The notes beneath the pieces were generated by a model. That model did no database searches and was not told where the DNA came from. It was given only the letters and a program-made list of their open reading frames with translations. A stretch of DNA of 64,000 nucleotides from Eukaryota sp. TZLM1-RC (Eukaryota > Protista > Metamonada: BaSk clade), in assembly GCA_040285825.1 (NCBI GenBank), contig JAUPSS010000002.1:558001-622000 (forward strand), in the 5' to 3' direction. Positions 1,570 to 64,000 of this stretch are shown here, one piece after another (position 1 is the first letter of the stretch; the number at the start of each line of letters is the position of its first letter). Both the position numbers and the translations under genes were made by a program.

Positions 1570-1689
1570 GTTTTTTAAAAAAAGTCATTACTGAAATGAA
1601 CATTATTAAAATGTTATCCATAAATCTGAATCAGTTTCTGAGCGCAAAAAATTAATTTCATAAGAATAATGACTTCATCATTCTCAAGT

Positions 1690-1810
1690 CTTGCTTGACT
1701 GAATATGTTTGCAATGGCTGAATCCAGAATGAGTGGTAATGAAAGGCCTCAATATCTCTGTAGTAGATAGTTTCTGTTTTTATTGCACGAAAATTGATCG
1801 TGTATTTACA
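1690..1810 (+). pseudogene. Fanzor 3'-end remnant (family of the 36537 copy) with conserved downstream non-coding sequence
   Basis: Translates LNMFAMAESRMSGNERPQYLCSR* (stop 1768-1770), near-identical to the C-terminus of ORF 36537-37394. Downstream CACGAAAAT.GATCG.GTATTTA is shared with that copy. Confidence 0.85.
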
Positions 1811-6939: not shown

Positions 6940-7230
6940 CTATTGTAGAAACTGGAGAATTCAAAAGTAAAACACATTTAAGTAAATTAAGTCGAAGGCC
7001 ACTTTTTTAGTAATTGAACTTTTATTAAACTTACACACTTGACACAATAAACTCATAACTAATGGGACGAAATTCATTGAACCAAGATTTCCTCTATAAA
7101 ATCTTGATCTGCTTGCTGTCTAGCTAAAACTTCTCTAATTCGATTGAAAAACCGAGGTAATCTATTAATAATGGCAAATTGAATTCGAGAGCGCCATTTC
7201 AGGTATATTGCCATTGAATGATTGGGGAAA
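6940..7230 (-). mobile_element. Rearranged fragments of RLE retrotransposon family A, including its 3' end
   Basis: WRSRIQFAIINRLPRFFNRIRE..EEILVQ* matches the end of ORF 62018-63379; RT-region pieces at about 6925-7000. Confidence 0.75.
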
Positions 7231-7555
7231 ACATCATCCATATAAGCCAAAAATCTTGAATGAACGAAACATTGTTTAAATTTGTAATAAAATTGGATGA
7301 ATTGCCAGACAGAATAAATAGTCCTCAGACACATTTTTAAAATCAACAATAACTGATATCCTATATCCTCAAGAATTTAATGACGACAAATTTTCGTCAT
7401 TTCCTTGAACAACAATTGGCTTGTTATTGAACTCCGTAATGTTATGCAAATTCAATTTAATGTATTCCATCTAGACACTAAACAACACAAACTAAAATTC
7501 TAAATCTGCATATCTCACATAAGCCAAAAAGTTTTGATTCACTTCATCCTGTAGT

Positions 7556-9567
7556 CTCTGAGAGCTTACATAATATTTTTTCTGTGTGTTGCTTAAGCAG
7601 GTTCAACGAGAAAGCAAAACAAATTTTATTACCCTTTCAATATGGTATTAATACCACAGATCTCTTCAGCGATATTTGCTGCTGATGTTTTATTTCGCCA
7701 AAATGAATCCAATGTTTGTATGTCATTGGATTATTAATGCTTTCAATTCACTCAGTCGTCGCAGTATCCATGGTGCTCTATTGCAATATATGCCGGAATT
7801 AATACCGTATTTTCAATCAACATATTGCACATATTCCTATTTTCCTTTTTTTAATAACATTTTGAGTTCATCAAGTGGTGTAAAGCATGGGGATCCGTTA
7901 GTACCTCTTTTGTTTTGTTTGGCCATTCATCCTATTTTACTGCAAATTCAAGAGATGTTTCCTTCACTAAAAATGATTACATATATGGATGATGTTGTGC
8001 TTATTGGTGATTTAAATATTGTGAAACAAGCAACTATATGTTTTAAAGAATTATTTACCAAAATTGGTCTCCGACTTAATTTACCTAAATGTGTTTTGTT
8101 ATCGAATTCTCCAGTTTCCACAATAGTTGATGGTATTGAAATTCAAGCCAAATTATATTCAATTGATGCTATTCGTCATTTGGGTTCGTTTTTAGGAAAT
8201 AATGATGAAATTACCAAAAAATTGTTTGAAAAGTTGAACTCAATTTCTGACAAAATTGACCGAATGATGAATTTAGATATAAAAAAACACATCAAATTTA
8301 CCATTATAAGACGACTGTGTTTTAGTTCCAATTGTAATCATATATATCGATCTACAAATCCTCTTGTCACTAGACCTTTGGCTCAGAAGTTTAATGAGTT
8401 ACGTGCAAAAGTTCTGTCTCAATTACTGGGATGTAAAATGTTTCAACTTCCAGATCATGCTTACCTTAGTCCACATTATGGCGGTTTAGGGTGGACGAAG
8501 GCTTCTATTCTTACCTCGTGTGCTTTTGTTGGTGGATGCAGAGATGCAATCTTTGAGTTTTCCGAAAGTTTTGCAGATTGGGAAAATTTATTGATGACAA
8601 CGCAAAGTTCCACTGTTTTTGCATTAAATGAAGAAATTTCAAAAATTGATGTAGAAAAATGGGGGCGATGTTTTCCCCAATCATTCAATGGCAATATTCC
8701 AGAAAAAATGTTTTAAATTTGAAGTACACTCTTCGAACATTACAGAAACGATTGACTGGATTGTAAGAAAAAGATCTTTATAATAATATATGCAGCTCGG
8801 CTGTTTTAAATCAAGATCTTCACTCATTGTTATTGGAAAAGGGTGTTTGTGAAAACAAGTCGTCAGATTCTTCACTTTTTGTACCACGAAGATTTGGATT
8901 GTGTGCCACTAATGAAGCATTTGTAACAAAAATGAGATTATATTTGAACATCCCCATTAATCAATTATTATCAAAAGAAAAATGTATTTGTTCGAATTCA
9001 CCTCAACTCACTTTGCGCCATGCTCTGAATTGCTCTAAATTGATAACTTATCGTTCTTCATTACATGATGCTGTTAGAGACACTGTTTTCAATATGGCAC
9101 AAACTGCAAGGATATCGTGTATCAAAGAGCCCCTGCTGAAGGAAACACTTTCTCTGAATAATTTTGGTTCTGATGATAGAGGTGATGTATACTGTGATTG
9201 GATTGATAATTCTGAAGCTATTGTTGACTTTGTCTCATGTAATGTTGCAAATGATACTTTGGTTCACAGAAAAAAACTTAATCCTGTGGCTGCTCTGGAT
9301 TTTAAAGCAAAAGAGAAACATAGAAAATATGATAAAGATATTGAAGAGGCTAATGTCGATAGAAATACACAGCTGGTTTTTATTGCTTTCCCATTTTCGA
9401 TAAATGGAAGCTTATCAGTTGAAGCAGAAACTTTTTTGGATGACTTCCAAAAAATGGTGCAAGAAAAAACAATGAAAAGATTTGATATTTTTTTATGGCG
9501 TTCACGGATTCAATTTGCCATTAGTTATGAGTTAATTTAATTAAGTGAGCAAATTCAATAAATACAG
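7556..9567 (+). mobile_element. 5'-truncated, degenerate RT-RLE non-LTR retrotransposon (family A)
   Basis: RT motifs NAFNS, GVKHGDPL and YMDD; CIC..HALNC, HDAVRD, RGDV..D and K.KEKHRKY; frameshift near 8716; 18-bp TSD TTCAYTTCATCCTGTAGT at 7538-7555 and 9568-9585. Confidence 0.9.
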
Positions 9568-15916: not shown

Positions 15917-15991
15917 TCTGACGAAAATTGACTATAACAATGAAGTAATTTATGTTGATGTAAGGAGATAGAAGTGGAATAATTACAAAAA

Positions 15992-16470
15992 CTATCTACT
16001 ACACAGATATAGAGGCCTTTCATTACCACTCATTCTGGATTCAGTGATCGAAAACATACTAAAACATGTCAGCTTATTTCTTGTCAACAGCTTTTTTGAA
16101 CCATTGTTACTGAATTTACATTCTGGTTAATGCAAGCTACAAAAAGACAACGAGGGTCTTTTCTCGCTTTTCGAATCTGAGATTGGTTACCCTCAAAAAT
16201 GTATAAAGCGATTCAAAACAAACAGGTCATTTTGCAAAACTTATATCCATTTCTTTTGAGAAATTGAAACCATCCAATACCTCAATTCTCTGTTGTTTCA
16301 GATTTTTAGAACCGTTTTTACCATAATCAGCCATTAGTATTAAAGTTTCTTTTGGGTTGCCAAACTGTTGAACAAGGTTTTTTAACAACCAGCTTTCAGT
16401 CTTTTGCTTATGAATAAAGGTTGCATATTATGAATGCTCCACAAGTCAAGACTGTAAACGTCAATAAAAT
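15992..16470 (-). pseudogene. Fanzor C-terminal remnant (family of the 36537 copy)
   Basis: Nucleotide similarity to 36537-37050 (KNLVQQFGNPK, FLKRNG, ..RP.YLCSR*), with several indels. Confidence 0.85.
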
Positions 16471-18087
16471 TTGATTGCATCGGTTGACGAACAATTTTTC
16501 ATTGGTCAACATTGGGTACTTGTCGCATTCTGGATCAAATCCAGAACAGCAAAAGCTTTTCTTTTTGATAGTCTTCGTCATAATGAAGAACAACATCAAA
16601 AAAATTAATTCAATAATTTTTGAAAAACTTTGAATCAATATCAGTCAGAATTTATCTGAATTTTTTCAATCTACTTTGTATGATTGTGGAAAATTCACCT
16701 CATTGTTTGCAAGAAGAATGATCAATTTGTTTTTGCCAAATCAGTTTAATTCAATCGCTTCAGTTCAAATTAAACAATTTGTCAATAAAGACAAAAGATG
16801 TTTCTATAGCTGTGTTGGCAATGAACGAAAATCATTTGAGACAAAGAAATGCTCTTCTGTACAAAAAACCATCAGAAAAATTCGAGCTGATGTACTGAAC
16901 ACACTTTTGAAACGTGTAAAAACCTCTTCAATGAGAATCCGCTGACTCATTAACCTATACCCTTTAATAACACCATCAAATGTCAAATGACAATTTGCTC
17001 TTAGGCTTTTTTTCATATTGATATTGAAACTTTCATGTTGGGTAAAAAAGTCAGTGATGGGGATGAAATAATAGTCATTTCTGCAAGAGAGCATTCCATC
17101 TCTCACTGTCAATCTACAAGAAAGTTTGTTTCTGTTTCTCATATTGTAACCCGAGAACAGATTGAATAAAATCTTTGTTTTTGTGATCTTGTAGAAAAGT
17201 TAACAAGCAGAAATGAACAATATTGTTAAGTTGATGATAAAAATATCACTTTATATCATCATTTCTCTGAAAATGAATTGCTAAATTGATTTAAAAAATT
17301 ACTAGAAACTTACAATCCTCATATAATAGGTGAATTCAATATTGTCAAATTTGACACCCCACATATTATGAAACGTTCTGAAAATGAGGACTTTCTTAAG
17401 GGTGAATTTGATGCTAGTGAATGGATTCAATACTATAATTCAAATCTACTAGTATTGAATCACTACTACTTGAACCCCTTGATTGCTGGTTGATTTATTG
17501 TTGATACTTGTAGTATTAGCACAAATTATTATCAACCACGCAAATTAAAAACAGTTTCTAAAATTTTATTAGGGGAAAGTAAAATTGACCTTGATCCTCA
17601 GTATATTGCAAAGTATTGGAAGGTTCATGCAAATAATCCTTTCTCAGATTTTTCCTTATCCCAAAGAAGAACACAGTTGCAATTTATTGTCAGAGGGATA
17701 CATATTAACCATGAAATTATTTAATTTCTTTAACAATGACCAATTCATGGAAACTGTTAAACATAAACCTTATGATGGTTAGAAGGAGAGTCTAAAAAAT
17801 GTCATCAGAGATCCCAAAATGATTGACGTGATCGCTGAGGTAGTAATTAGGTGTCAGGAAATTTCTATTGTTGGTTTAGAATTCATTTGTGGTTATTATT
17901 TGCATCTTTTTCACTTACACCCTAATGATATTTTACCAAAAATTAAAAAGGAATTATTTCGTGACGGTTTTCTTGTGGTGAAATCTCAAAGTGAGGAGGA
18001 AATTTACCTTAGCCCAAAGACAAAAACAGCTTTACCAGATCCTCGTTGTGCGATTGCTGTAATTCTCTTTCCACCAGTTCAAAGACA

Positions 18088-20174
18088 TGTAGTGGAAAAT
18101 AACTTTATTTTTAATCTGGACTTCAAAAATGCTTTTAATTCTGTAAAGCGAAAAGCAATTTTTGAAGTAATTAAATCTGATTTTCCTGAGCTAACTAGTT
18201 CTTTCTACCAATTTTATGGTAAAGAATCAGATTCAGTATTTAATTCATTTGGTGTAAAATCATCTTCTGGTGTGAAACAAGGTGATCCTTTAGGCTCGTT
18301 ATTGTTTTGTTTAGCTATTCACACAACTTTAGATATCATTGAGCAAAAATATCCTTCTATAAAAATAGTTGCTTATATAAATGATATAACTTTGATTGGT
18401 TCATTTGATTTACTAGAATTGGTTGCTCAAGAAATTGCCGATTCATATAAAAATATTGGGCTTTATCTTAATGCGAGCAAATGCCTTCTGATTGGCTCTT
18501 CTGCTCAAGATCTTGTGATAAACGATTCTATTGTCCCTTTTACTAATTATAGTAGTGATGCTTTTAAGTTCCTTGGTTGTTGGTTAGGAAACGTGCCTCA
18601 AATTCAGAATGAATTGCAAGTTATTTTGGAAAAAATGAAAATTGAACTTGATTCAATTTCTTCTTTTGATTTAGACAACATGTTAAATTTTTCATGCTTA
18701 AAATTTGCTTTACTGGGAGAATAACTAACATTTTGAGATCTTGTGCTCCTTCCAAAGCATTAGGTTTTTGTCGTTCCTTTAATTAATTGAGAACAGCATT
18801 TTTTGCTGTTTTATTGGATGTAGAACGTGGAATATTGAAAAATCACTTATTTTCTTAAGCAAATTTGAGTGGTATTGGATTTACTAAATTTTCTATTCTG
18901 TGTCAATCAGCATTTTTGGGTGGAGGCAAGAATTCTATTTATGAATTTTCTCGTAGATTTCCTGAAGATTCTCATGTGTTAGTTCCCAGTTGCAGTTCAT
19001 ATTTAAACGAATTATCTTGTGAACTTGATAGATTGCCACCACAAATTTACACCAAATGTTTTCCCCAATTAATTCAAGAAATTCCAAACCGATCTCTTTT
19101 AAATTTACCGTTTTGCTGCAAAAACCGTCAACAAAAATTGTCAAGAATTTTTGAAAGCTTGGAGTTATTTTTTTTTATTTGATGTTAGACTTGGCTTGGC
19201 CAAGAAAAAGAATCCCGCTTTTGCAAATCTTTTACAAGATATGTGTGATAGTACTTCTTCTGCCTTAGTAACAACAATTCCTCAAGTATATGGCATTCTC
19301 TTAACTGATTCTGCCTGGACTTTGAATATGAGATTTCCTTCCTTTATTTGGCCTGATAATTTACCTCATAATTTAATTTGAAAATGTTCGCGAAAAATTA
19401 CAGGATTCAAGATTTTGTAGAGCAAATCTTGGTTCAATGATAGTCGTCCCATTAGTAATGAGTTAATTTAATTAAGTGTGCAAATTCAATAAATAATTTT
19501 GTTTACAATAAATTACAATGACTCATTTCTTAAATTGTCAATATTTTATTACTTTTAGAAGCAAAGTTCACGATGCTGTAAGAGACCAATTATATTGTAC
19601 GTGTAAGTTTCATAGAATTGAATCCTTTTTGGAACCTCTGTTGTCAAATCTGTTTGATAGTGAAGATGATTTTCATAAGAATAATAAAAGTGATGTCATA
19701 TTGCTTGGATTGGATGTAACCTTCATTTTATTGGATGTAATGTCTGTTGATCCTTGTAATGCCTCAAATGAAAGGCTTGTAAATTCTGAAATTCACAATG
19801 CTCTTTCAAATGCTGAAAATTTCAAAATCAAAAACTACAATGAACCTTTGTCCAAATTGCCCAGTCAATAGCATGCAAAAAACAATTTGTATCCATTTGT
19901 ATTCTCTTTTTGGTTCACTTGCTCCAACGGCTATACGTTTTTTGTCAGATTTTGAAATGATTGTAAAGAGAAGAACTAATAGAAACTCCAACAGATTGTT
20001 TTGGCAAAATAGAATTGTGTTTTCTTTTTTTCCGGGGTTGTTGAAGATGGTTTCTGATGCTTTGCATTCACTTGGATCTCACTATGAGAGAGTTGCATCT
20101 AGTGTTTTTGTTTTGGGAGAGATGTTTCACTTAGATGTTGATTTATAGGTTTTAAATAAACTTGATAAAAAAAC
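18088..20174 (+). mobile_element. 5'-truncated RT-RLE non-LTR retrotransposon (family C) nested in the Fanzor
   Basis: LDFKNAFNS, GVKQGDPLG, AYIND, HFLNC..HDAVRD and DV....D motifs; A tail; 10-bp TSD TTCAAAGACA at 18078-18087 and 20175-20184. Confidence 0.88.
19403..19509 (+). mobile_element. Short family A 3' end nested in the family C element
   Basis: Matches the family A terminus (..CTTGGTTCAATGATAGTCGTCCCATTAG..AATAAAT); AAATTACA repeated at 19395-19402 and 19510-19517. Confidence 0.75.
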
Positions 20175-22108
20175 TTCAAAGACAAACTTGTTCCAAAAGT
20201 TTTGTGCAAAAAAAGGAATAAGTAATATTTTGTATTACACAATTGCCAAACTGATAGTAAACTTCAAAAAAGCATCCAAGAGTATTTCTTTGATTACTTA
20301 TATCGGTTTGTTGATGTTTTCCATGATGTTGAGAGAAACAACCATGTCGTGAAAAAACAGGATAAGAAAAACTTCTCATCATTCATCAGCAAAGTTAAAT
20401 ATCTCCTTCAAGAAGGACGTAGAGACATTGATAGTGAAACATTTGCAAGGAGAAAAAAAGTCTCGTCAATTACTTCGCTTTTCATTAATGTCCGGAGCCC
20501 TCTTTTACTTCCCAGTAATTCTAAAAGGGAAAAGTATTCAAAATTTAATTTTTCGTCAAAATCAAATTTGTGTTTGAGAGCAATGTTTTAAATTAATAAT
20601 TATTTAGAAGATGAGGAGAGCAAACCCTTTCATGCTCTGCCTTTGAAGAATTCTTGTATTCCCTCGTATATCAGAATTGACAAGACAAGTTTATTGGACT
20701 TGTTCTTTGTTCAATTCAAGGCCATTCTTGGTCAAAGGTCGTCCTACCAATGCAATAATCAAGCTGCTGATTTGGTTTTATGGAATACCTTTTTGAAAAT
20801 GGACCAGATTAAAAACACGGAACCTTATTCAGAAATTCAAAGTACATCATGTCTAGCATCGAGACTGATGGAATATCAGTATCATTCATTCAATCTAGAA
20901 TGGATTTGAAAAAAAACAAGGTAACTGCAAAAGAATTGAAAGATAAAAGAAAAATATATTGATGACCCCAGCATCAATCCTTCTGATTTTCAAGATATGA
21001 CCCTTGCTGCTGCTGATCCAGGTAAATCTGATCTACTCTATTTTTCTGCAAATTTAGCTTCTGGAATGACTCAGTCAAAACAACCTGAGAGAGATAAATA
21101 TGTTCATTTCAGGTTCACTCAAAATCAACGAAGATTTGAGTAGAAATGTTCCAGATTAAAAAGAATAAGAGACAGCATACGGAATGACACTCTTATCACA
21201 ATAAGTAACTCTACTGGTAGAGTAATTATGAACCATCTGATGAGCAACAGCAGAGGATGGATTTAAGCAGCAGTATAATTAATCAAATGACTGAAAGAAC
21301 AATTAGTTTATTAAGAGGAAAAGTACCTCTAAAAAACAATATTCCCCACGAAATTGATAACTCATTAAATTTGAGTAACAATAATCAAAAAACTAAATCT
21401 GTAGCAGAATAAGAAGCAACTGTATCCCAATTCAATTCCAAAAGTTGCAGGTTTGATAGATTTATGGAGTATATTAAACAAAAGAATTTTGTGAATACTA
21501 TCGTTGGTGAAGTCTATCATCAAAAAATACTTAGGAAACTACGATGATGGGCTGAGATTAATCGCACAAGATCTGAGGCAAAGATGATTCAGAGATTCAA
21601 ATCAGTAATAGGTGATACAGGGCAAGTAGTTATCGGAATCGGAGACTGGGAACAACGAAAACACAAGAAATTCAAAGAACCTACGAAAGGAAAAGGTTTG
21701 AGAATTCTATTTAAAAAGGCTGGTTATAAGGTCTTTTGATTGATGAGTTTCAAACCTGTTGTTGTTGCAATTGTAAGAAAGCGGAGAAAACAGTTGAAAC
21801 ACTCCAATGGTGTAAACATCCAAGGCCATGAAAGAGGCATGAGATGTCTATTCGTCACGGGCTTACCATGTGTAAATCATGCGAAAGTTTGTGGAATAGA
21901 GATCGAAATGCTTCGTTGAATATGTTGGCAGTGATGGTAGCACATGTAGAAGGTGGAGATAGGCCGTAATACCTGCAGAGAGTCAAGGTTGAAGGTTCAA
22001 AGATAAAGGTATCAAGGAGAAAATCTTCCACTTTCTCGCAAACTCAGTCCCTCTACATCGGTGTAAAAAGGACACTTTCTTCATTGTTTTAGACATCATC
22101 TGTTACAA

Positions 22109-24370: not shown

Positions 24371-24564
24371 ATGGAGCCATGTTTTCCTAAACATGAATCC
24401 AATAATAAATAGTAAGTATAGTAAAAAATAGTAAGTAGGCAAATTTGATCAACAACCATTATAAGTGGTGAATTCTATTTCAATTCAAAAAAAGGAGTCC
24501 GACTACAAGTCCACACAGATAATTTTGGTTAGAATTGTTATAATACACCTCGAGTAAAGAAGGA

Positions 24565-24920
24565 AACATAATCCTGTAAAACCTCTTGAAAACAAAGCGA
24601 AAGATATGAAAGATAGTAAATATGACAATGATATCAAAGAACTAAAGTTGATTGAAATAAACAACTTTTTTATTGCTTTCCCATTGGCAATAAACGGAAG
24701 ACTATCAGTAGAAGCAGCAAACTCTTTGAAAAAATTCCAAAAATTGGTTCAACAAAACAATGGATTTGATGTCTAATTATGGCGTTTTCGAATTCCATTC
24801 GAAATAATTAAAAGATAACCTCGGTTCTTACATCGAATAAGAGAAGGAATGTGAGAAAACAAGCAGATCAGGATTTTGTAGAGGAAATCTTGGTTCAATG
24901 AATTTAGTCCCATTAGTTAA
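24565..24920 (+). mobile_element. Decayed 3' part of RLE retrotransposon family A
   Basis: Nucleotide similarity to the family A C-terminus, ending GAGGAAATCTTGGTTCAATGA..CCCATTAGTT. Confidence 0.75.
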
Positions 24921-25252
24921 GATTATACATAGTGTTGGAGTTCAATATAATTACAAAATTCGTATAAAGTCCTTGTGATTTCAACAATGCCCAGATAACG
25001 GAGGAGTCTATTCCCAGATCGTTTGTTTCTACCTTGTCTGGTGATACCGAAGATTTGTATAATGCCAAACATGAGCACTACGGACCTGAGTTTGTCGAAG
25101 CTTGAAATAGTGGCTCAGTTGACGGCTTTGATGCTTTGACAACGAACGTTTCTTGATGGAAAATTCCTGTTTTTCTGGAAGAAAAATTCTATTTCCGAAA
25201 TTGTGTTGGAGGATTACTTTTTTGAACCTTCAACATCTGACTCTGTACAAGT

Positions 25253-27480: not shown

Positions 27481-27584
27481 AAAAGAATTAAATTGTGATA
27501 ACGAATCATGGAACTGTTTGGTTGAAAAGCGGGCGAAAACTACAGGAAAGTTGTAATCATCATTTTATTTTCAGGAGAAAGTGT

Positions 27585-28080
27585 GTGAAGTTGATAACCT
27601 ATCGTTCTTCATTACATAATGCTGTTAGAGACACTATTGTTAATATGGCACAAACTGCAAGAAGCTCGTGTATTAAAGAGCCTTTGCTGAGATAAACACT
27701 GTCATTGAACGAGTTTGAGTCAAATGATAGAGGTGATATATACTGTGATTAAATTGAGAACTCTGAAGCTGTTGTTGACTTTGTCTCATGCAATGTTGCA
27801 AATGACACTTTGGTTCACAGAAGAAGACTTAATCCTGTGGCTGCTCTTGAATTAAAAGCCAAAGAAAACATAGAAAATATGACAAAGATATCGAAGCAGC
27901 TAATGCTGATAGAAACAGACCACTTGTTTTTATTGTTTTCCCATTTTTCATAAACGGAAGACTATCAGTAGAAGCAGAAACTTTTTTTGAAAAATTTCCA
28001 TAAAATGGTTCAGGAAAAAACAATTAAAAGATTTGATATCTTTTTATGGCGCTCTCGAATTCGATTCGTCATAATGATAT
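27585..28080 (+). mobile_element. Decayed RLE domain fragment, family A
   Basis: KLITYRSSLHNAVRDT..SCIKEPLL and downstream similarity to 9040-9520. Confidence 0.8.
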
Positions 28081-33171: not shown

Positions 33172-34093
33172 ATGTACTTATTGAATTTGCACACTTAATT
33201 AAATTAACTCATAACTAATGGGACGACTATCATTGAACCAAGATTTCCTCTACAAAATCTTGATCTGCTTGCTGTCTAGCTAAAGCTTCTCTAATTCGAT
33301 TGAAAAACCGAGGTAATCTATTAATAATGGCAAATTGAATCCGTGAACGCCATAAAAAAATCAAATCTTTTCATTGTTTTTTCTTGCACCATTTTTTGGA
33401 AGTCATCCAAAAAAGTTTCTGCTTCAACTGATAATCTTCCATTTATCGAAAATGGGAAAGCAATAAAAACCAGCCGTGTATTTCTATCGACATTAGCCTC
33501 TTCAATAATCTTTATCATATTTTCTATGTTTCTCTTTTGCTTTAAAATCCAGAGCAGCCACAGGATTAAGTTTTCTTCTGTGAACCAAAGTATCATTTGT
33601 ATCATTACATGAAACAAAGTCAACAATAGCATCAGAATTATCAATCCAATCACAGTATACATCACCTCTATCATCAGAACCAAAATTATTCAGAGAAAGT
33701 ATTTCCTTCAGCAGGGGCTCTTTGATACACGATATCCTTGCAGTTTGTGCCATATTGAAAACAGTGTCTCTAACAGCATCATGTAATGAAGAACGATAAG
33801 TTATCAATTTAGAGCAATTCAGAGCATGGCGCAAAGTGAGTTGAGGTGAATTCGAACAAATACATTTTTCTTCTGATAATAATTGATTAATGGGGATGTT
33901 CAAATATAATCTCATTTTTGTTACAAATGCTTCATTAGTGGCACACAATCCAAATCTTCGTGGTACAATGGTTACAAAAAGTGAAGAATCTGACGACTTG
34001 TTTTCACAAACACCCTTTTCCAATAACAATGAGTGAAGATCTTGATTTAAAACAGCCGAGCTGCATATATTATTAAAAAGATCTTTTTCATAA
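33172..34093 (-). mobile_element. 5'-truncated family A RLE retrotransposon
   Basis: Near-identical to 61960-62880; small frameshifts. Confidence 0.9.
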
Positions 34094-34606
34094 TTCTGTT
34101 CTGCCAAAACGTCTTGTCAATAACTCTTCATGGACGCTGTTTCACAATTGCAATAAAATCCAAGCATGATGAAGCAATTGGTCTAATAGAGCTATGTAGG
34201 GAGAATATAACTGGACAAAGGACATAATGAATATTTGATTCAGCATTCAACGATAGCAACCTTGCTTTATATTTAATAATTTTAGTTTTTACGGAACAGA
34301 CAAGGGGTTGAAATAACTTGAATAATTTCTCATTTTCCCTCTCCGATTGATCAGAAGAGATGTGGAAAAAACAATTAACCATCATGCCAGTTATGACATG
34401 TAGTAATCGCTTATGTATTTGGTTGATTTTTAGTTCTTAAAATAAACATTTTATTTCACCTTCTTGTTCTGTAAACCCATGGATCCAAAAATCCCCTTTA
34501 GTGCTTAGTTGGTCAACAATGGGGCAAAAGCTTTGGAATCTACAATTTGAGTCTTTTCAATACTGAATAATTTCATCTTGAATTGATTTGAACATCACTT
34601 CTTCAA

Positions 34607-35687: not shown

Positions 35688-36473
35688 TTAACTCTCTTTA
35701 TCTTCCTTGAATGTCACATTAATCCCACCCAATTGTTGTTGTACCATTTCTTTTATTCTTTCGGTAGCCTTATCCAAAGTTGAGCTAATTAAATCCTCTG
35801 CACTTTGTAGTTCCATCTCTTCATTGTCTTCTTCTGTATTAACAGAATCAGAACAAGAAGAAGAACTAGAGTCGGGGTCATCGACAATAAACTTATCTTG
35901 ACCTAAATCATTATCATCCCTCATAACTTCCTCCTCCTCCTGTTCTTGCACCAGGTCACCTTCTGCTAAGGGAGGAAGATGAGGGCATTGTACAGGTATT
36001 GGAGATTCAGTGGATGTAAAATAGAATTGATGGTTTGGAACAAAAACAGACTTGAACATTTCGTAAAACCGAAAATAAGTATTGGTGTAAAACTCTGTGA
36101 TTGATTGTAAATCAACATGGGAAAATATAGCACTGGAGAATGGGGGGCGATGGACAGCATGTCGAACTAAACATTGTTTGAAGAGATCAAAGCTTCGTTG
36201 AAGAGAAAGAATAAGGTGCATTGACTGACGGTGATGCCATTCAGTTAAGGATAATAATACCGAAATCTTGCGAGGAGAAAGAGCCTGTGTTTTTCCAAAG
36301 TAGAGAAGAGAAAGGTAAAGGTCAAGCAAAATGAGTTTCAAATGATCTTCAGTGTAAGGTATGTGAACAGAGGTAGCAATCAGCGAGCGACGACGTTCGA
36401 TGTCTACACATTGAAGTGCTGTCAGAATCTGCTCCTCACTGAGCATACCATCTAAAAAAAGAGGAGACTCCAT
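35688..36473 (-). CDS. Flagellar central-pair C1a-32/CFAP119 (CCDC189)-like protein
   Basis: HAVHRPPFS..IFS......ITEF..NTYFRFY..FK.VF motif; probable ATG at 36473 (MESPLF). Confidence 0.75.
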   Translation of the reverse strand: MESPLFLDGMLSEEQILTALQCVDIERRRSLIATSVHIPYTEDHLKLILLDLYLSLLYFGKTQALSPRKISVLLSLTEWHHRQSMHLILSLQRSFDLFKQCLVRHAVHRPPFSSAIFSHVDLQSITEFYTNTYFRFYEMFKSVFVPNHQFYFTSTESPIPVQCPHLPPLAEGDLVQEQEEEEVMRDDNDLGQDKFIVDDPDSSSSSCSDSVNTEEDNEEMELQSAEDLISSTLDKATERIKEMVQQQLGGINVTFKEDKES

Positions 36474-36499
36474 TTTGTCAGATAATGTGGAAAATTCCC

Positions 36500-39400
36500 A
36501 TAAATACCGATCTATTTTCGTGTGGAATAAATACAACTATCTACTACACAGATACTGACGTCTTTCATTACTACTCATTCTGGCTTCAGCAATTGCAAAC
36601 ATATTCAGACAAGCCAGCCTATTTCTATTGAAAATCTTTGTTAAGCCTTTGTTACTGAGTTCGCAACTCTCACTATTACATGCTAATAAACCATGACATG
36701 TAGTAACAGGAGTCTTTTCTCTTCTATAGAATCTGGGATTTGTTACTCTCAAAAACGTAGCAACCTTTTCAAAACAAACAGGACATTTTGCTGAAGTGAA
36801 AGCTTCATTAATGATCAATACTTCAAATCCATTCCTTTTCAGAAATTGAATCCATCCAATGCCTCGAGTAGGCCTATGATGTTTTAAATTCTTCGAACCT
36901 TTTTTACTATAATCACTCATTAGTATTAAAATGTCTTTTGGATTGCCAAACTGCTGAACAAGGTTTTTTAACAACCAACTTCCAGTCTTTTGCTTGTGAA
37001 TAAAAGCTTGTATTTTATGAATGCTCCACAAGTCAAGACTGTAAAAGTCAATGGTCAAAAAAACTTGCCGAAGTTTGGCAATCACAAAGTTGGAAAAATT
37101 TATAAAAGTTGCTGAATTGGCGGCAACTGCGGATAATTCGGTGTTTGCATCTTCGATTGTCATTTCGTTAGACTCTATCATTTGGTTCCTGATGTAATCT
37201 AGCTCAGTGTACTTTGTCGCCCATCGTTTTTGCTTTTCATTCATCCTACTTTTCAAAGACCAGGACATCTGAGTCATTCTCAACCATTTGAATTTCTTGT
37301 CTTGATTCATCACCCGACTATTTCTTTGCTGTTCAGTTTCGTGTTCAGGCACCATGGCTAGTTCTTGATCAGTCTTTTTACTCCCAAAATACAATAAATC
37401 ACGTTTTTCAGAATCACAAACAACAATTCGTTTGTCTTGAAAAGTATCAACATCAACATCATCAATATATAAATCAGAAACACTAGCCTTGTTGTCTGGC
37501 TTACATTTCTGACCTGGTAAATCCTGACGAACAAATTCTACTACAATATTAAATCCATCTGTGTGATAATGTTGTTGAATTTATAGCTCTTCTGTTTGAA
37601 GATTGGTTGGTTTAAATCGAGAATATTAGACCAAAAGTCAAATTGCTCAGGTGGTTTGAATTTCGTAATTTGGGCTTGTGTATTGACCATTTTTAATCTC
37701 TGATCAGGCAACAAATCGTCCATGAATGTTTGTCTAATAATTGTCCATATTGTATCTGTATCAATAGGAAAATATCCAGGGCCTACAGTGGTTGAAACAG
37801 GAGAAATATGATAAGGTTTTTTCTCTCTACTGAAGATATACTGGGCAATTGTAATTGCTGGTTTTAGGAATATTTGAGGATCTTTTTCAACAGCGTCTGC
37901 AAGAAAATGTATATCCACTGGAAATATGTTGTCAACTAAATTCTCGTCAGTGACCAAATTCTCAATTTGACAAGTAAATGGCTCAATAAGACCTTCAAAT
38001 ATGTCTCTAAGTTCATTATTTCTGATATCATGTTGTTCACATAAATCGAAAAATTCATCATTCAGAAGGTCTGAAATATTTTCAGGATGATGAAACAAAG
38101 AACTCAAGCAATCTCTATCAACTAAAAACATGTTTTTGAATTGACGAAGCCTAAATCTAAATAGTGAAATAATTGTAGATAATGGCGTTGAGTATCCACT
38201 CAGCTTGTGCATTTCTGATAACACATTTTCCACATCTGGTTTATCAAAAAAGACATTAATAAATCGATTAATATGTTTTTCATAATCTAATTTCAAATTA
38301 TTCTCAAAATTGGCAAACAGTACTGGAACCATATACTCAGGTGGTCTACTGAATTTATCAGTTGGAAATCGTGGAAACTGTTCAGGCTTGTATCTTAAGT
38401 GATCAAGATAACTCAATGTTTCGTTTAATTTTTGTTGCTCAAAGGTAGTTCTTAAAGTATAATCTCCTTCACCATAAACAAAGTCTTCAAAATCCTGTGG
38501 AAATGCACTTCTTGGTTTTACCATTTTTTGCTCATAATACTCAGCTGAAATATAACGAATTCCGGCCATTAATGATTCATATAATTTGGCAGATATTCGT
38601 GGCAGTAGTAAATTACGTTCAAATCGGGACTGTAAATACAGCTTTAAGCAACATGTGGTGTGAATACGTAATTGTTGAAAATTTAATGCAGTTTCTTTCG
38701 ATTTGAATATCACATTTGAATGTTTAACCATTGAGTTGACGGTTGCTCGAATGGTTTTATAAGATGATAAAATAAATTTGTCTTTCTGAAACAGCACGAA
38801 AAGTTTCAGACAAAGGACACAATAATGAAGCCCATATTGAATCAAATTTTGTATCAGAGGAGGTGTAGCTAAACAATCAATTGGCAAAATATGGGAAAAT
38901 TCCCTATGAAGTTTGAGTTTCTTTTCATTTATCATTTTATATGCCAGATTGCCTAATCCATGTCCGTAGAGTATTTTTATGAATTTTTTGGCAAATACCA
39001 AAGTATCTAAAAGAAAAATGCCATTTTCCCTGATGACAACTTGTCTCCATCTCGGTGAAAGTTGATTGAGTACATCAATTGCTGTATCATCTGGAACAGT
39101 GGGAAATGGTAAATCAAAATAGTTTAATCTATTTTTAAAACCTGTAAATCAAACTGCACTAAATTGTGATTAAGAACACAATGGGGTTGATGATTATTAA
39201 TAAGGTTTAAAAACCTACAAAGCAAGGTTTTTTCGTCAGAGAACATTTTTCTGCCTGAATATCCATATCAATGTCTGGTAATCTGATTTGAGGACTCATT
39301 CTCAATATAAGTGAAAATTAACTCTCCAAAAAGAAAACATGACGGTCAAACTTACCAATAACTATTGAAACTAAAAACACTTTCTGATCTGAAATCCTCT

Positions 39401-40550
39401 CATCCATTTGCTCATCAGTTTTTTTCAAAAGAATTTGCACCCTCTTTGCTTTATTTGTTGATAATCTCGTCAGGAGGGAGAAATTGGCCATCATGATTTT
39501 GGTAAAGGTGACCATCCTGATAGGTTTCAAGATCAAAGCACATAACAGTGGGAAGATTTCGATTTGAGGTCATTGATATGAATTGAATCAATGGATCAGG
39601 CTTGAAACCACTTCGACTTGGCTCAATTTTTTTTGACCATACTCGGTTTTAATGGTTGTTTTGTCAAAATCTTCCTGTTCTCGTTATTCAACATTTCTCG
39701 ATACAAATTTCTCGGTTCAGTGCTTTTTGTTGTTTTTTCCCTTACGCATTGATGTTTCTGGTCAAAAATCGCTTTCCTAATAATTTTTGATGGAGGAGTT
39801 GATTTAAAATTAGATCTTCTCTTTTTGGGACCAGGATTTGCTTCCACATCTCCATCCATTGTTAAATCAACAGTAAATGTGTTTGTTGATAGAAGATGTT
39901 GGCAGCTTCTGGATTGAAAACATAAATTATAAACATAATAATCAAACTCGACGTTATCAAAATAACAGTTGAAGACACAACATCCCATATCTAAAGTGCC
40001 AGTACTTAAACCACAAAAAACAACAAACTCAAAAACATCAAAATAACAATTCAAAACAAAACATAAACAAAAGAAACATCCCATATCCTCAGAACAAGTA
40101 TTTAAACCACAAAAAAACAACAAACTCAAAAACATCAAAATAACAATTCAAAACAGAACATAAACAAAAGAAACATTCCGTATCTAAGGTGATAAGCACC
40201 ATGGCTGATTCAACAGCACCCATATCATGACTCACATGATGACTAAAAAAATGCAATACTCTACCCCCACGGAAGGATCAGAACGACGATTCTGATAGGA
40301 AATCGAGGCTCTGACCTTCCGTTCATGCCTGTAAAGCAGGATGACTGTTCCTGACTGAGGAGTTCGGGAGGAAGTACTCTGCTGTTCTGTGAAGAACAGG
40401 TTGAAGGAGGAGGTGGGTCCGTAACCTCGTTATCCTTTTTCTCGTCTGGCTGCATAATGTTAGAAGAATGGGAAGAATCAAGATAATCTCGCTGTCTGAC
40501 ACGATGTCTGACATGCTGATTGAAATTTCAAATTGATTGCTAATTTCCAC
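36500..40550 (-). mobile_element. Fanzor element encoding [Cys/Phe-rich repeat peptide]-2A-[NLS]-PolB-type exonuclease-Fanzor, with several frameshifts and stops
   Basis: 2A motif at 39827-39868; ExoI VMCFDLETY at 39520-39546; ExoII DEKTLLCRFL..PHCVLNHNLVQFDL at about 39145-39240; ExoIII-position LIQYGLHY; RuvC-I IVVCDSEKRDLLY at about 37390-37430; INEAFTSAKCPVC; HGLLAC..C..FNRNRLACLN. The left boundary is approximate. Confidence 0.85.
39955..40186. repeat. About 96-bp tandem repeat (two full copies and one partial) coding for Cys/Phe-rich units on the minus strand
   Basis: TAAACCACAAAAAACAACAAACTCAAAAACATCAAAATAACAATTCAAAAC..CATAAACAAAAGAAACAT at about 40007 and 40103. Confidence 0.85.
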
Positions 40551-40879
40551 AATGGTATCAAATGCCTATCGACTGTATCTCTATTAGTGGTGATCAACAT
40601 CAGCTCGATTTACCCTCTAGCTGTTCTGGTCGTTGTTACTCCGTCTAAACTCTATGTTTTTTTCCAGTTTCCTTCTCCTTCCTTTACCTCTTGTCCTCTT
40701 CCCATTCAGCTATCTCAACAATTCTCCCTTGCTCTCTCCCTCTCTGTTTCGACGGGACCTAAACAAATGCTTGTTTCCCTACTTTCTACTCTGTCCACAA
40801 TTCTAACTCAATACAGTCTTCTTCATGAGTTCAACTCCACCCTCACCTCTTCTCCTGTCTTGGTGGAAGTAGAAATGTG

Positions 40880-41720
40880 GTGTTTTCAAAACCTGAGAAT
40901 GTGGAGGGGCTGAGTTATAAAAATCTGATTTTTGAAATCAGAAATGATGAACTCTTGTGCGATACTGGTCTTTCTCCACCATTGACATGTGCTTTCATCT
41001 CTGCCACCATTTTTACCGAAGCATTTCGATGTCTATTCCACCAATTTTCTGATGATTTTGCCATAGTAGGATAAGTTCGCTATAAATGTACATCTTATGC
41101 CTCTTCCATGGCCTTGTGTTTCTGCATCATCGCAACGTTTCTACTACTTTCTCTGCTTTCTTGCAATTATATCAACAACAACTAGTTCGAAACTCATCAG
41201 TTAAAAAACCCTTATCACCAACTTTTTTAAATTCAATTCTTAAACCTTGTCCTGTGGTAAGTTCTTTGAATTTCATGTGTTGTTGTTCCCAGTCTCTAAT
41301 TCCTTCTGAATAAAGTTTGGTGTGATTAATCTTATCCATTTTTTAAATAGTGTTTCACAAAAACAAATCAGCATTTTCGTCATTACTGTAAGCTGTTGAC
41401 TTTTTATCAACGGTATTCTGGTATTTGGTAAAATACAATTCCTATAAATTTGTCTTATTCATTCTACTGAAAGATAACATTCAAGATTTCTTTAAGAGCA
41501 GATCTGTTTTAAATAAAAATAATGCATTTAAACATAAATTTTAATTCTCAATACCACTTTTCCGTACAATAACTGGGAAGTAGATGATGTAGATGAGTAT
41601 CAATTATTAAGAAATTCGCAGAGTGACTGTTACTGGGTATTTATATGTTAAATTGATCAAATGTTCTCCTGTTGATTCAAGTCTAGAAATTTAATGACGC
41701 TCTGCACTCATAGAATCAAT
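40880..41720 (-). pseudogene. Decayed Fanzor C-terminal half (family of the 17230-22065 copy)
   Basis: DWEQQHMKFKELTTGQGLRI..TDEFRTSCC*YNCKKAEK..RPWKRH and WWNRHRNASVKM..AHVNGGERP; shared non-coding motif AACTCAGYCCCTCYACAT. Confidence 0.8.
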
Positions 41721-45499: not shown

Positions 45500-45877
45500 G
45501 GAGTGGAAAACAAGGTCACAAACCTAATCTTAATAAACAAGACAATTACGTAATACTATAAAAGTCGACAAGCAGTTTCATGGGGTTTGAGGCAGTGTAA
45601 TCAATGCAAAACGTTCTGGAATCGAGATACCAATTCTGCTCTAGATATTCTGATGTTGGCTGAAGACATTCTGGATGGAAGAGAGAGATCAGAGGTGTTT
45701 AAGAAACAACAGTCTCAAACCATTGTTATTGAAATTACTGATGACAGTCTAAAGGCTGCTGGAAAGGGTACTAAAGGTGCTGGTATACCTATGAGTCCGA
45801 TGCAACAACTTGATCTCAATACATTATCACCAGTAGCGAAAGCGAAAGTTGAAGAAGAATGTATAGTTTTGAAGTAA
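45500..45877 (+). pseudogene. Fanzor C-terminal remnant (further family)
   Basis: RQCNQCKTFWNRDTNSALDIL..AEDILDGRERSEVF. Confidence 0.8.
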
Positions 45878-46430
45878 CTTAAGAAATCAAGCTTTTGTCT
45901 ATTTAGGTTGGTTCTTAGGAGAAAGGCCAAGAGCGAATGTGGTTAGCGTACTATTGTTAGTTAGGAACGAGACAATTGTAGGTGTAAGGGAGTCAGAAAT
46001 GTTGTTTCCGCTGACGTTGTCAAGTCTTTACATCGGAGAAGATAAAGTTCGTGTAAGAAAGAAGTTGTGAATGTTGTCCTGTCAAGAGTCATTGTTAGGT
46101 TGAGTGGTTTCTATTTTAAGATTAAAGAAGTGTCAAGTTGATCGGATTATGAAAAAAAAACTTTATACGAACTCATTGAAACAACACGTTTTCTTGATTG
46201 GATATGCTAATGTTATCACCTAAAAAACTCCTTCAACTGTAACCTTTTCAAGAAAGAAAATAGTTGCGGCAGCTTAAATATCACGTATTATAGTGTTGAT
46301 AATTATTATTTGTTGTTTATAATTATCATTTTGCTCAGACTTTGTATTTGTATAGATGTAAGCAGTTGTGAATAAATCAAATTTTTATTGTTGACTGTCT
46401 GATCTTTTCTCGACTGACATATTCGCTCCA

Positions 46431-48353
46431 ATGGCAAATCCAGAATTGCCACGTCGAGGGCGTGTACTCCTCTGGGAGGTTAACCGTCGCGAGCAACCAA
46501 TAAACGACAGCAAGACGACAGTTCCAGCAAGTGCTGCTCAGATCTTCTCTACTGCAGCTCTTGTTTCAATGGAAAGACAGTTTCGCTATATTCGAACTGT
46601 CACTGTGCTTATTGCCCGGTTAGCACAGCTGTTCGTCCTGCAATATCCGGAAATGGCTTTCTGGTTATATCAACAACAGTTCTGGTATCAATGTCAAGAC
46701 TTTGTAATGGTACCTCACCCGACTGTGAGACGCCCATTCGAGAATCATATGGAAGTGTACCGCGCACTCTATGATGTCTCTTTCCGACCTGGCTGGCCGT
46801 TTACTCCTATTGGCTTTTAGAAGGGAACCGACAACTGGTGCCACTCTGACATTAGAAGCTTTCGCGCACTGCAAATGGCGAGCAGCTTTTGTCAAATACT
46901 TACTGATGGCACTGTCTCCTGGAAGCTGAACTCCTTGCGGACAATGGCTACCTTCTTTGAGTGCCCTTGCCCAAAGAAATATGCTTCATTAGTGGTGAAC
47001 ACGACTGCAGCCACTATTCCTGACTCTTTTGTATCATTTGACTCTTGGTATCATGAAGGTCACTATGAGTACATAATGGACCTATTTATTCAACAGGTTG
47101 CCGACCCTCATCGTTTTGACGCTATGTTGATGCTGGACAATGTTGATCTCAGTCCAGACAACATCACCTTCTTATTCACTGCTGGGCTAAATATTTTATC
47201 CTTTCTGGAAAATATTGCATCTGACCCCATGCGAAAAAATGCCGTGTCCCCATCCCCCAGTTATTCTCCTGGCTTTATCTCTTTTAGTCAAAAACTGGAA
47301 AAGCATTTTCTCTCTTTTAATGCCAACCACTGTCTGCTGAAAGATCCGTTTGCCTTTTTCAGAAAAAAGAAGTATCTGACTTACACAATCAGTTCAGATG
47401 CTGTTTCAGTCCGCTTCACGTTTTCTTTTGCCCCCAAAAAAAATAAGAATCACCGGACAGACAGAGAATTGGCAACCACCATAGCCAGTGGGGAACTCGA
47501 TATACCTGCAAAGAGTCGGAAGCGAAACTTTAGACTTCAACAACAGGTCCGTTCAAGGCAACGTCGAAGAACTGACGACGCCTATGAGCCTCCGCCAGTT
47601 GATCCAATTGAATATTCATTTTGTGCAATTGATCCTAATCACAAAAATTTGTGTGGTTATTCAATTGGATCAAGAATTGATAATAACAATGTTGATCATC
47701 AACTTTCGGGCCTTGTTCTGAATCCAAAGGCAAGGAAGATGATTCACCAACCGGTCCTGACCCATGCATCACCAAATTGCTATTTTGCTAAGAATTTACA
47801 CAAATATCTTAATGAAATAGCAATGCCTTTGATGTGGGTGCCGACACAAGAAGAAATCAGCAATCCCGACTTCCGTCCGAGAACTATACCAGACCAACTG
47901 CTGATAAGTGGAGATCGCCGAGCCCTGCGCCGCAACAAATTTGATTTCTTTATAAGAAGGCAAAAAAGAATAATGGGATTTATTGAAAAAATTAAACTAA
48001 TGGCTAATGGAAGAGAAACCATAATTTGGTTTGGTAGTGGAGGTGATGGGCCATCAAGACAATCTGTGAAAACCCCAAGGAAGCGCTTTTTGAAGGAGAT
48101 TCAGAAACATTTTACATATGTGAAACCTAATGGAGATGAATTCTACACATCTGCCAAAACGAATTGCTGTAAGGTATTCAATCAAAAGTTGTATCACGAT
48201 GATGGGAGGGTGAACAACGATAAGTTTGTTTGCCCTCAATGTCAGACACTCTGGTCGAGGGACATCTCAGCTTCCAGAAACCAACTGGAGATTGCCATAA
48301 GTGAGCACTACTACAATGAAAGACCTGAGGCGTTCCGGAGACCCCGTAGATAA
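46431..48353 (+). CDS. Near-intact Fanzor of about 640 aa with one in-frame TAG at 46818-46820
   Basis: ORFs 46431-46820 and 46875-48353 share a frame. RuvC D/E/D intact: FCAIDPNH, GDEFYTSAKTNCC, CPQC.TLWSRDISASRN. TISSDAVSV motif present. Confidence 0.88.
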
Positions 48354-61959: not shown

Positions 61960-63832
61960 ATGTATTTATTGAATTTGCACACTTAATTAAATTAACTCAT
62001 AACTAATGGGACGACTATCATTGAACCAAGATTTCCTCTACAAAATCTTGATCTGCTTGCTGTCTGGCTAAAGCTTCTCTTATTCGATTGAAAAACCGAG
62101 GTAATCTATTAATAATGGCAAATTGAATCCGTGAACGCCATAAAAAAATATCAAATCTTTTCATTGTTTTTTCTTGCACCATTTTTTGGAAGTCATCCAA
62201 AAAAGTTTCTGCTTCAACTGATAATCTTCCATTTATCGAAAAAGGGAAAGCAATAAAAACCAACTGTGTATTTCTATCGACATTAGCCTCTTCAATATCT
62301 TTATCATATTTTCTATGTTTCTCTTTTGCTTTAAAATCTAGAGCAGCCACAGGATTAAGTTTTCTTCTGTGAACCAAAGTATCATTTGCAACATTACATG
62401 AGACAAAATCTACAATAGCTTCAGAATTATCAATCCAATCACAGTATACATCATCTCTATCATCAGAACCAAAATTATTCAGAGAAAGTGTTTCCTTCAG
62501 CAGGGGCTCTTTGATACACGATATCCTTGCAGTTTGTGCCATATTGAAAACAGTGTCTCTAACAGCATCATGTAATGAAGAACGATAAGTTATCAATTTA
62601 GAGCAATTCAGAGCATGGCGCAAAGTGAGTTGAGGTGAATTCGAACAAATACATTTTTCTTTTGATAATAATTGATTAATGGGGATGTTCAAATATAATC
62701 TCATTTTTGTTACAAATGCTTCATTAGTGGCACACAATCCAAATCTTCGTGGTACAATGGTTACAAAAAGTGAAGAATCTGACGACTTGTTTTCACAAAC
62801 ACCCTTTTCCAATAACAATGAGTGAAGATCTTGATTTAGAACAGCCGAGCTGCATATATTATTATAAAGATCTTTTTCATACATTCCAGTCAATCGTTTC
62901 TGTAATGTTCGAAGAGTGTACTTCAAATTTAAAACATTTTTTTCTGGAATATTGCCATTGAATGATTGGGGAAAACATCGACCCCATTTTTTTACAGCAA
63001 TTTTTGAAATTTCTTCATTTAATGCAAAAACAGTGGAACTTTGCGTTGTCATCAATAAATCTTCCCAATCTGCAAATCTTTCGGAAAACTCAAAGATTGC
63101 ATTTCTGCATCCACCAACAAAAGCACACGAGGTAAGAATAGAAGCCTTCGTCCACCCTAAACCGCCATAATGTGGACTAAGGTAAGCATGATCTGGAATT
63201 TGAAACATTTTACATCCCAGTAATGGAGACAGAACTTTTGCACGTAACTCATTAAACTTCTGAGCCAAAGGTCTAGTGACGAGAGGATTTGTAGATCGAA
63301 ATATATGATTAAAATTGGAACTAAAACACAGTCTTATAATGGTAAATTTGATGTGTTTTTTTATATCCAAATTCATCATTCTGTCAATTTTGTCAGAAAT
63401 TGAGTTTCAACTTTTCAAACAATTTTTTGGTAATTTCATCATTATTTCCTAAAAACGAACCCAAATGACGAATAGCATCAATTGAATATAATTTGGCTAG
63501 AATTTCAATACCATCAACTATTGTGGAAACTGGGAAATTCGATAACAAAACACATTTAAGTAAATTAAGTCGGAGACCAATTTTGGTAAATAATTCTTTA
63601 AAACATACAGTTGCTTGTTTCACAATATTTAAATCACCAATAAGCACAACATCATCCATATATGCAATCATTTTTAGTGAAGGAAACATCTCTTGAATTT
63701 GCAGTAAAATAGGATGAATGGCCAAACACAACAAAAGAGGTCCTAACGGATCTCCTTGCTTTACACCACTTGATGAACTCAAAATGTTATTACCAAAATG
63801 TAAATTAGAATATGTGCTATATGATGATTGAA
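61960..63832 (-). mobile_element. 5'-truncated family A RT-RLE retrotransposon, best-preserved copy
   Basis: GVKQGDPLGPLL and AYMDD; one frameshift near 63410; intact RLE C-terminus; 11-bp TSD AAGTAAAAGTT at 61949-61959 and 63833-63843. Confidence 0.92.
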
Positions 63833-64000
63833 AAGTAAAAGTTGAAAACTAAGGCCCATTGATGTCGTAGGGAGAAACCAGACGTTGTTGGAAGATTTGG
63901 TTGGTAAAAAAAATAAACCAAAATGCAACCAAAGGAAAACCACAGTAAATTTTATTGAACAATTTTAGTGAACAACAGTTTTTTTGGACAATAGCTGGAA

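Follow-up and report, generated by a model that had tools for sequence, protein, structure and literature searches.

In-frame fusion of a family-B polymerase-type exonuclease to a Fanzor1 nuclease in mobile elements of the metamonad Skoliomonas

Fanzor1 proteins such as SpuFz1, PpFz1 and GtFz1 combine a full WED-REC-RuvC-zinc-finger body of 600-800 amino acids (aa) with a conserved 3′ non-coding end, and their guide is the 3′ flank (PMC10432273). Mobile 3′-5′ exonucleases of the DEDDy type have been described from Dada transposons, where they lie inside the DNA-cutting protein, their proposed role being to process the 3′ ends left by cleavage (PMC3706591), and from open reading frames (ORFs) of rotifer retroelements (PMC5408684), while RNA-guided nucleases have been tethered to exonucleases artificially, as in TREX2-Cas9 (PMC13370227) and T5-Cas12f (PMC12337685). 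The mobile element analyzed here joins the two kinds of enzyme. It occupies at least positions 36486-40768 (minus strand) of the window, a 64,000-nucleotide stretch of scaffold 2 of Skoliomonas litria TZLM1-RC (contig JAUPSS010000002.1, 558,001-622,000), a free-living anaerobic metamonad (PMC11603281), and its decayed gene encodes an exonuclease of the family-B DNA polymerase (PolB) type in front of a Fanzor1. Taken jointly, it is almost certain that this is a single-frame fusion of the two domains as identified, with conserved catalytic residues, kept by purifying selection and present in many copies, of which the one in the window is inactive.

The element shares with described Fanzor1s the complete body and the conserved 3′ end, with Spu-1 the lack of a transposase in cis and with GtFz1 the D-E-N triad. 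It differs from them in placing an exonuclease of about 250 aa plus linker in front (giving 1100-1900 aa instead of 600-800), in its 2A motif and optional Ulp1 protease, in having no terminal inverted repeats that could be seen, and in docking before host start codons. The exonuclease has the ExoI DxE, ExoII NxxxFD and ExoIII YxxxD motifs of PolB proofreading domains (Pol delta, herpes and nucleocytoplasmic large DNA virus (NCLDV) PolB, Pol alpha/epsilon), but comes with no palm, fingers or thumb, and has a helical insertion after ExoI. In Dada and the rotifer elements the partner is a DDE transposase or a reverse transcriptase (RT) instead of an RNA-guided RuvC nuclease, and the rotifer exonucleases are RNase D-like; the engineered fusions use TREX2 or T5, not a PolB proofreading domain. 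Exonuclease cargo has precedents in all three. A natural exonuclease-Fanzor pairing was found in no paper of the searchable literature, which leaves out most subscription papers, and the word 'exonuclease' is absent from those main Fanzor papers or reviews that were checked. The original prediction, made from the letters of the window, had likewise known of no such architecture.

Twelve loci (L001-L012), fetched as relatives of the window element, were compared, of which L001, L004, L006, L009 and L010 come from TZLM3-RCL, the deepest-branching isolate (PMC11603281). Each of these five has a single ORF of 1198-2065 codons (1312 in L001) that contains both exonuclease and Fanzor without interruption, and a 1194-aa 2A-exonuclease-Fanzor protein recurs at three separate loci with 97% nucleotide (nt) identity and differing flanks. 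In the sister copy L002, a single frame of 312 exonuclease codons, 641 codons of Fanzor body and a tail of 48 codons is broken by two stops only. The original prediction had proposed an in-frame fusion, had called for an intact copy and had named intact copies with separate genes as the finding that would overturn it; because L002 and the five TZLM3-RCL loci show one frame, that objection fails, and the intact copies are at hand in TZLM3-RCL. Among the intact natural copies are P0044 (KAL0220299.1) and P0007 (KAL0221781.1). No fully intact copy was found among the TZLM1-RC loci examined, where P0085 seemed intact but has a frameshift at the DNA level that the gene caller had bridged; GEM-RC1 holds partial relatives. 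A truncated PolB gene standing beside a Fanzor was considered and rejected, as was a remnant of a viral polymerase.

Within the window, six-frame translation recovers every motif on the minus strand where it had first been read: ExoI at 39540-39520, ExoII at 39171-39148, the ExoIII position at 38839-38822, RuvC-I at 37418-37398, RuvC-II at 36809-36792 and RuvC-III at 36629-36603, with the Fanzor starting at about 38791, zinc-finger cysteine pairs at 36785-36774 and 36680-36663 and the stop codon at 36539-36537. The range 36537-39620 given earlier holds at its stop end but not at its start, the gene beginning farther upstream with a 2A-like motif at 39850-39827. Read with an X at each break, the protein has 1107 aa from the methionine at 39859 (1097 after the 2A site), in agreement with the first estimate of about 1,100, and aligns end to end with the intact P0044 (32%, E=3e-167); this joined read-through was used only for alignment and tree steps, and the broken pieces were searched separately. 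The open stretch 39148-37544 (535 codons) carries the second half of the exonuclease together with the N-terminal half of the Fanzor, as had been noticed from the start, and the best NCBI matches of this piece in a protein search are proteins of Eukaryota sp. TZLM1-RC, TZLM3-RCL and GEM-RC1. Polymerase palm motifs (A, B, C) are absent from the window, again as first stated, and the Fanzor begins right after ExoIII; because of this absence the gene is not a family-B DNA polymerase.

The exonuclease domain (38792-39546, with three frameshifts and two stops in the window copy) was assigned by Pfam family PF03104, by profile matches in the PDB and by fold. Specifically, the ExoII piece (47 aa) on its own exceeds the gathering cutoff of Pfam DNA_pol_B_exo1 (26.9 bits vs 23, E=3.8e-6), and a profile of 14 exonuclease sequences has yeast and human Pol delta as its best PDB matches (E=9e-12 and 1e-11), aligned from ExoII through ExoIII. 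The predicted fold of the sister-copy exonuclease (P0003; predicted local distance difference test 87, predicted template-modelling score (pTM) 0.88) matches PolB exonuclease domains with Z scores of 18-19.5 and a root-mean-square deviation of about 3 Å over about 190 residues, and viral PolBs with E about 1e-10. The PolB-type DEDDy assignment of the original prediction is borne out by these matches. As candidate donor, Pol delta is best by sequence, and several PolBs are tied by fold. The family retains ExoI DxE, the ExoII Asp and ExoIII YxxxD, of which the window copy has lost the ExoIII Asp to Tyr. In the structural model, the first Fanzor strand follows the ExoIII helix after only about eight residues.

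The Fanzor half (36537-38791, with a frameshift near 37565) is complete. The part of the intact P0036 beyond its exonuclease matches SpuFz1 from the first residues of the latter (E=4e-31, by sequence), and a Foldseek search with the full model returns SpuFz1 (E=4e-30, TM-score 0.79 by target), PpFz1 and GtFz1 as top structural matches, followed by PolB exonuclease domains. By sequence and structure it is closer to Fanzor1, with its WED and REC extensions, than to TnpB or Fanzor2, and the nearest atlas clusters are NCLDV Fanzor1s of 618-818 aa. The split RuvC and C4 zinc-finger pattern D-x(125-275)-[TS][TS]xx-C4-R[DN] is matched by motifs at 37418, 36809, 36785, 36680 and 36629, and copies with differing flanks in the Skoliomonas NCBI assemblies show a multi-copy, mobile, eukaryotic setting. 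By sequence, structure and setting this half is a Fanzor1, for which RNA guidance and cutting are predicted. The RuvC-III residue is Asn throughout the family, which could instead fit a protein that cuts weakly or not at all and binds host gene starts as an RNA-guided regulator, the exonuclease being accessory or vestigial; nuclease-dead TnpB repressors exist (PMC13565253), and the predicted guides would cover host leaders and start codons. This is quite improbable: GtFz1 is an active nuclease with the D-E-N triad (PMC11423790), the RuvC-I Asp and RuvC-II Glu are retained in intact copies, and the exonuclease carboxylates are near-invariant.

Indeed, among the fetched relatives the ExoI Asp is present in 48/48, the ExoI Glu in 47/49, the ExoII Asp in 55/56 and the ExoIII Asp in 47/48, counts which are not independent in that many rows are near-copies, with only about 30% identity between families. 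The ratio of nonsynonymous to synonymous substitution rates (dN/dS) in pairwise comparisons is 0.18-0.49 for the exonuclease and 0.18-0.39 for the Fanzor. At the level of coding sequence, purifying selection on the fusion is thereby shown. The ExoIII Tyr is less constant: the intact family of P0044 has Met and another family Val in its place, with all four carboxylates retained.

The window copy itself is dead, a pseudogene. Compared with L002, with which it shares 91.7% nt identity over 39682-36486, it has five frameshifts (about 39634, 39422, 39250, 39136 and 37565) and two in-frame stops (39453-39451 and 39320-39318), and its RuvC-I reads DSE in place of DPG. Three of the shifts (39634, 39422, 39136) fall in A/T runs, as single homopolymer shifts known from the assembly alone, and the original prediction had allowed that several might be assembly errors. 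Two of the shifts (+2 at 39250, -1 at 39136) and the ExoIII Asp-to-Tyr change, however, recur in L005, a 96% identical copy with 59 private substitutions; L002 lacks all three and L011 the two that were checked (39250 and ExoIII). Because these lesions are found in an independent copy, and because stops and catalytic changes are not homopolymer errors, the lesions look genuine, and assembly error was rejected as their main cause. The wider suspicion that the fusion is an artefact of two adjacent genes, or of long-read misassembly of an intact gene, draws on the same A/T-run shifts and on the use of a Nanopore assembly with Illumina correction; it is largely refuted by the single ORFs at five loci, the lesions common to copies, the stops and the catalytic substitutions, and is hardly credible. 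The first 669 bases of L005 are 100% identical to window positions 63332-64000.

Upstream of the fusion stands a 2A-like StopGo motif, DVEANPGP (39827-39850), with a predicted skip before the final Pro that would expose a basic start, PKKRR (39815-39829), resembling a nuclear localization signal (NLS) as judged from its residues. The consensus is D(V/I)ExNPGP; the window and most of the 24 relatives fetched, which represent several families, read DVEANPGP, and some have His variants. Similar peptides lie near the N-terminus of ORFs of apurinic endonuclease (APE)-type non-long-terminal-repeat retrotransposons (PMC3708506), but there they precede APE-RT and not an exonuclease-Fanzor or Ulp1. Farther upstream, a 97-nt tandem repeat (2.1 copies, 39979-40184, minus strand; more copies in L011) encodes a peptide rich in Cys and Phe that shares its frame with the 2A motif, and in P0114 a single gene call, which bridges one break, leads from this repeat past 2A into ExoI. 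Ahead of the fusion stand 2A motifs, which in L012 also set it apart from Ulp1. None was found between exonuclease and Fanzor in the relatives examined; therefore, the tether is kept.

Optional cargo across the elements includes genes for the Ulp1 protease and for superfamily 1 (SF1; Upf1-like) or DEAH helicases. L012 (5690-9704) shows a 2A-Ulp1-2A-exonuclease-Fanzor layout in which the Ulp1-like protease is broken by a retroposon piece. In L009 (3056-6898), an element of the 1194-aa family carries, in divergent orientation, a gene for a Upf1-like SF1 helicase (AAA_11/AAA_12), and L006 (6546-6830), which has the same 5′ end, looks like an internally deleted L009-type element. In L004 (5001-11084) the exonuclease-Fanzor frame also includes a DEAH helicase (2027 aa), and upstream blocks common to L004 and L007 suggest elements of over 11 kb with variable cargo. 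Such variety could indicate that the exonuclease, too, is cargo acting on RNA or free nucleic acid, trimming the 3′ end of the omegaRNA guide or degrading silencing small RNA or DNA, with the fusion providing co-expression and nuclear import only; transposons repeatedly carry DEDDy exonucleases as cargo, for which roles in RNA 3′-processing or silencing have been proposed (PMC5408684). That explanation is unlikely, given that the domain is PolB-like and not RNase D-like and that the other cargo is separable by 2A whereas the exonuclease stays joined in all families seen.

The 3′ end of the window element at 36486 is common to L002 and L011 (homology to L011 at 89-91% nt), the 5′ end given above being a lower bound. 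Copies of the window family share this 3′ end, their 5′ extent varies, and 5′-truncation is frequent; two such truncated 3′ ends lie in the window at 15974-16465 (minus strand), 57 nt upstream of the ATG of a 254-aa ORF, and at 1687-1808 (plus strand), 71 nt upstream of the IFT139 ATG. In all six window-family copies seen, a host ATG on the same strand follows the element end after 8-71 nt, compared with about 1.3% of window positions (the 8 nt of L008 are measured to the second Met, and two of the six ends are slightly eroded); in the TZLM3-RCL families this docking is not clear. At the window locus, the ATG of CLAMP (flagellar C1a-32) follows 12 nt past the element end, so the predicted guide, host flank at 36466-36485 (minus strand) according to the Fanzor rule, would cover the CLAMP leader and start codon. 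A candidate omegaRNA scaffold of three short hairpins occupies 36486-36560 (minus strand); the first hairpin overlaps the stop codon, and stem 2 is damaged by the loss of one nucleotide in the window copy. A conserved 50-nt 3′ tail was seen in five copies, and it forms three short hairpins in four unrelated families, with folding z scores of 0 to -2.2 (not significant), no covariation and no Rfam match.

Such elements are non-autonomous. Across the 12 loci neither an own transposase with defined termini nor any constant transposase was found, only a DDE_1 remnant upstream of L001, and no long inverted repeat was found in the part of the window from 33 to 44 kb. At L006, L008 and L010 the junctions carry 7-10 nt direct repeats containing CCAT on both sides, possibly variable target duplications; none was seen at the window locus or L011, and no constant one among the loci compared. 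A close parallel is CRe-1,2,3, the Fanzor1-bearing Helitron2 elements of Chlamydomonas (PMC3627910), likewise non-autonomous with intact 3′ ends, 5′ truncation and variable short target duplications; unlike those, the present elements have no ends common to a known Helitron and no Rep-helicase was seen, and the CRe Fanzors are without a reported exonuclease. It may also be asked whether the fusion serves new insertion, with a staggered Fanzor break near gene starts, ends shaped by the exonuclease and a one-ended copy, made by an RT or rolling-circle enzyme acting in trans, pasted in to give 5′ truncation and variable target duplications. The common 3′ end with variable truncation, the docking of six copies out of six, the abundance of RT retroposons nearby and the junction repeats, which recall the 7-19 bp duplications of CRe-1 (PMC3627910), speak for this. 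It is nevertheless improbable: a guide taken from the flank leads back to the old site and not to new ones, two loci have no duplication and 7-8 nt matches can be chance, and no poly(A) tail, Rep or constant transposase was found.

In the reading preferred here, a 2A skip would release an NLS-led exonuclease-Fanzor1 protein, which an omegaRNA from the element's 3′ end would guide to the element-free allele, where it would cut about 14-21 nt past the target-adjacent motif, as other Fanzor1s do (PMC10432273). The displaced non-target strand would leave the left-hand end with a free single-stranded 3′ tail that consists of right-flank sequence and is mismatched to the donor at the insertion point; the tethered exonuclease would trim this tail back to that point, blocking religation, and the matched 3′ end would invade the occupied allele and the element be copied (homing). 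First insertion at new sites would depend on enzyme supplied in trans. PolB proofreading domains favour single-stranded 3′ ends. In yeast recombination, Pol delta proofreading removes as much as about 40 nt from invading 3′ ends (PMC9477423), and homing has been described for OMEGA systems (PMC13565253). The full reading (a decayed copy of a Skoliomonas-wide, non-autonomous family whose covalent PolB-type exonuclease-Fanzor1 is freed from variable upstream peptides by 2A skipping and acts by cut-and-trim homing) has about an even chance of being correct. A shade less probable, just short of even, is the general proposition of a natural single-chain RNA-guided cut-and-trim enzyme, in which Fanzor1 breaks DNA, a captured proofreading domain removes the non-homologous 3′ tail, and repair copies an element that lacks a transposase and docks at the starts of host genes.

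Several observations weigh against homing: (i) the ExoIII Tyr is Met or Val in 15/48 relatives; (ii) on the branch to the window copy and L005, exonuclease dN/dS is 0.84 (18 changes) vs 0.26 for the Fanzor (Fisher p=0.066), a hint of relaxed constraint and hence that the exonuclease can be lost; (iii) stand-alone Fanzor1 relatives work without an exonuclease; (iv) the omegaRNA folding statistics fall short of significance; and (v) the full model, with pTM 0.60 and no nucleic acid, gives no geometry of exonuclease to DNA.

In a quick IQ-TREE run (no bootstrap, SpuFz1 left out), the Skoliomonas exonuclease-Fanzor families form one well-supported group apart from environmental Fanzor1s; the short entries without exonuclease inside it are mostly 90%-identical fragments, P0018, P0019 and P0090 having been judged from protein only. 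A metagenome scan returned 40 stand-alone Fanzor1 loci of 650-720 aa with no exonuclease in those loci, scans of viral contigs and prokaryotic genomes returned no relatives, word-based searches (of limited reach) with the exonuclease or Fanzor part of an intact protein matched only Skoliomonas proteins, and a feature-atlas search with the whole protein gave no usable match. At 17005-21966 of the window (plus strand) lies a second decayed exonuclease-Fanzor with exonuclease motifs (PF03104, E=0.009), interrupted by a retroposon that encodes an RT (about 17950-20150). The Fanzor part has Asp at RuvC-III and falls outside the main group on a long branch, for which reason the fusion may have arisen a second time independently.

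Other Fanzor remains surround the element. Just upstream, in the same direction, lies an older remnant of another family in the window, L002 and L011; in the window (40918-41303, minus strand) it is a 3′ remnant of the family found at 17-22 kb (77% nt), and a compact-Fanzor end is stacked alike in L002 and L011. A compact TnpB/Fanzor-like gene without exonuclease (46395-48353, plus strand; PF07282, E=6e-6; one stop at 46818) has relatives in L002 and L011, and 45554-45874 (plus strand) holds another Fanzor C-terminal remnant with a zinc-finger and WNRD motif. A repeat encoding a retroposon-like C-terminal domain is present in many copies (7021-9523, 24558-24927, 27579-28075, 33175-34096 and 61963-63219), and in L005, L008 and L012 it lies within or beside Fanzor elements. 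The host genes in the window encode IFT139, AdhE, CLAMP and a PP2A-A-like HEAT protein, which fit the lifestyle of a flagellate anaerobe.

With regard to what Fanzors do for their elements, an end-processing enzyme joined to the nuclease, and kept by selection in isolates from either side of the deepest split within Skoliomonas, suggests that the fate of the cut ends matters to the element, and the homing hypothesis becomes testable by separating exonuclease-dead from RuvC-dead function. The intact natural copies would be the evolved counterpart of the exonuclease-nuclease fusions that have been engineered for higher editing rates and deletion sizes.

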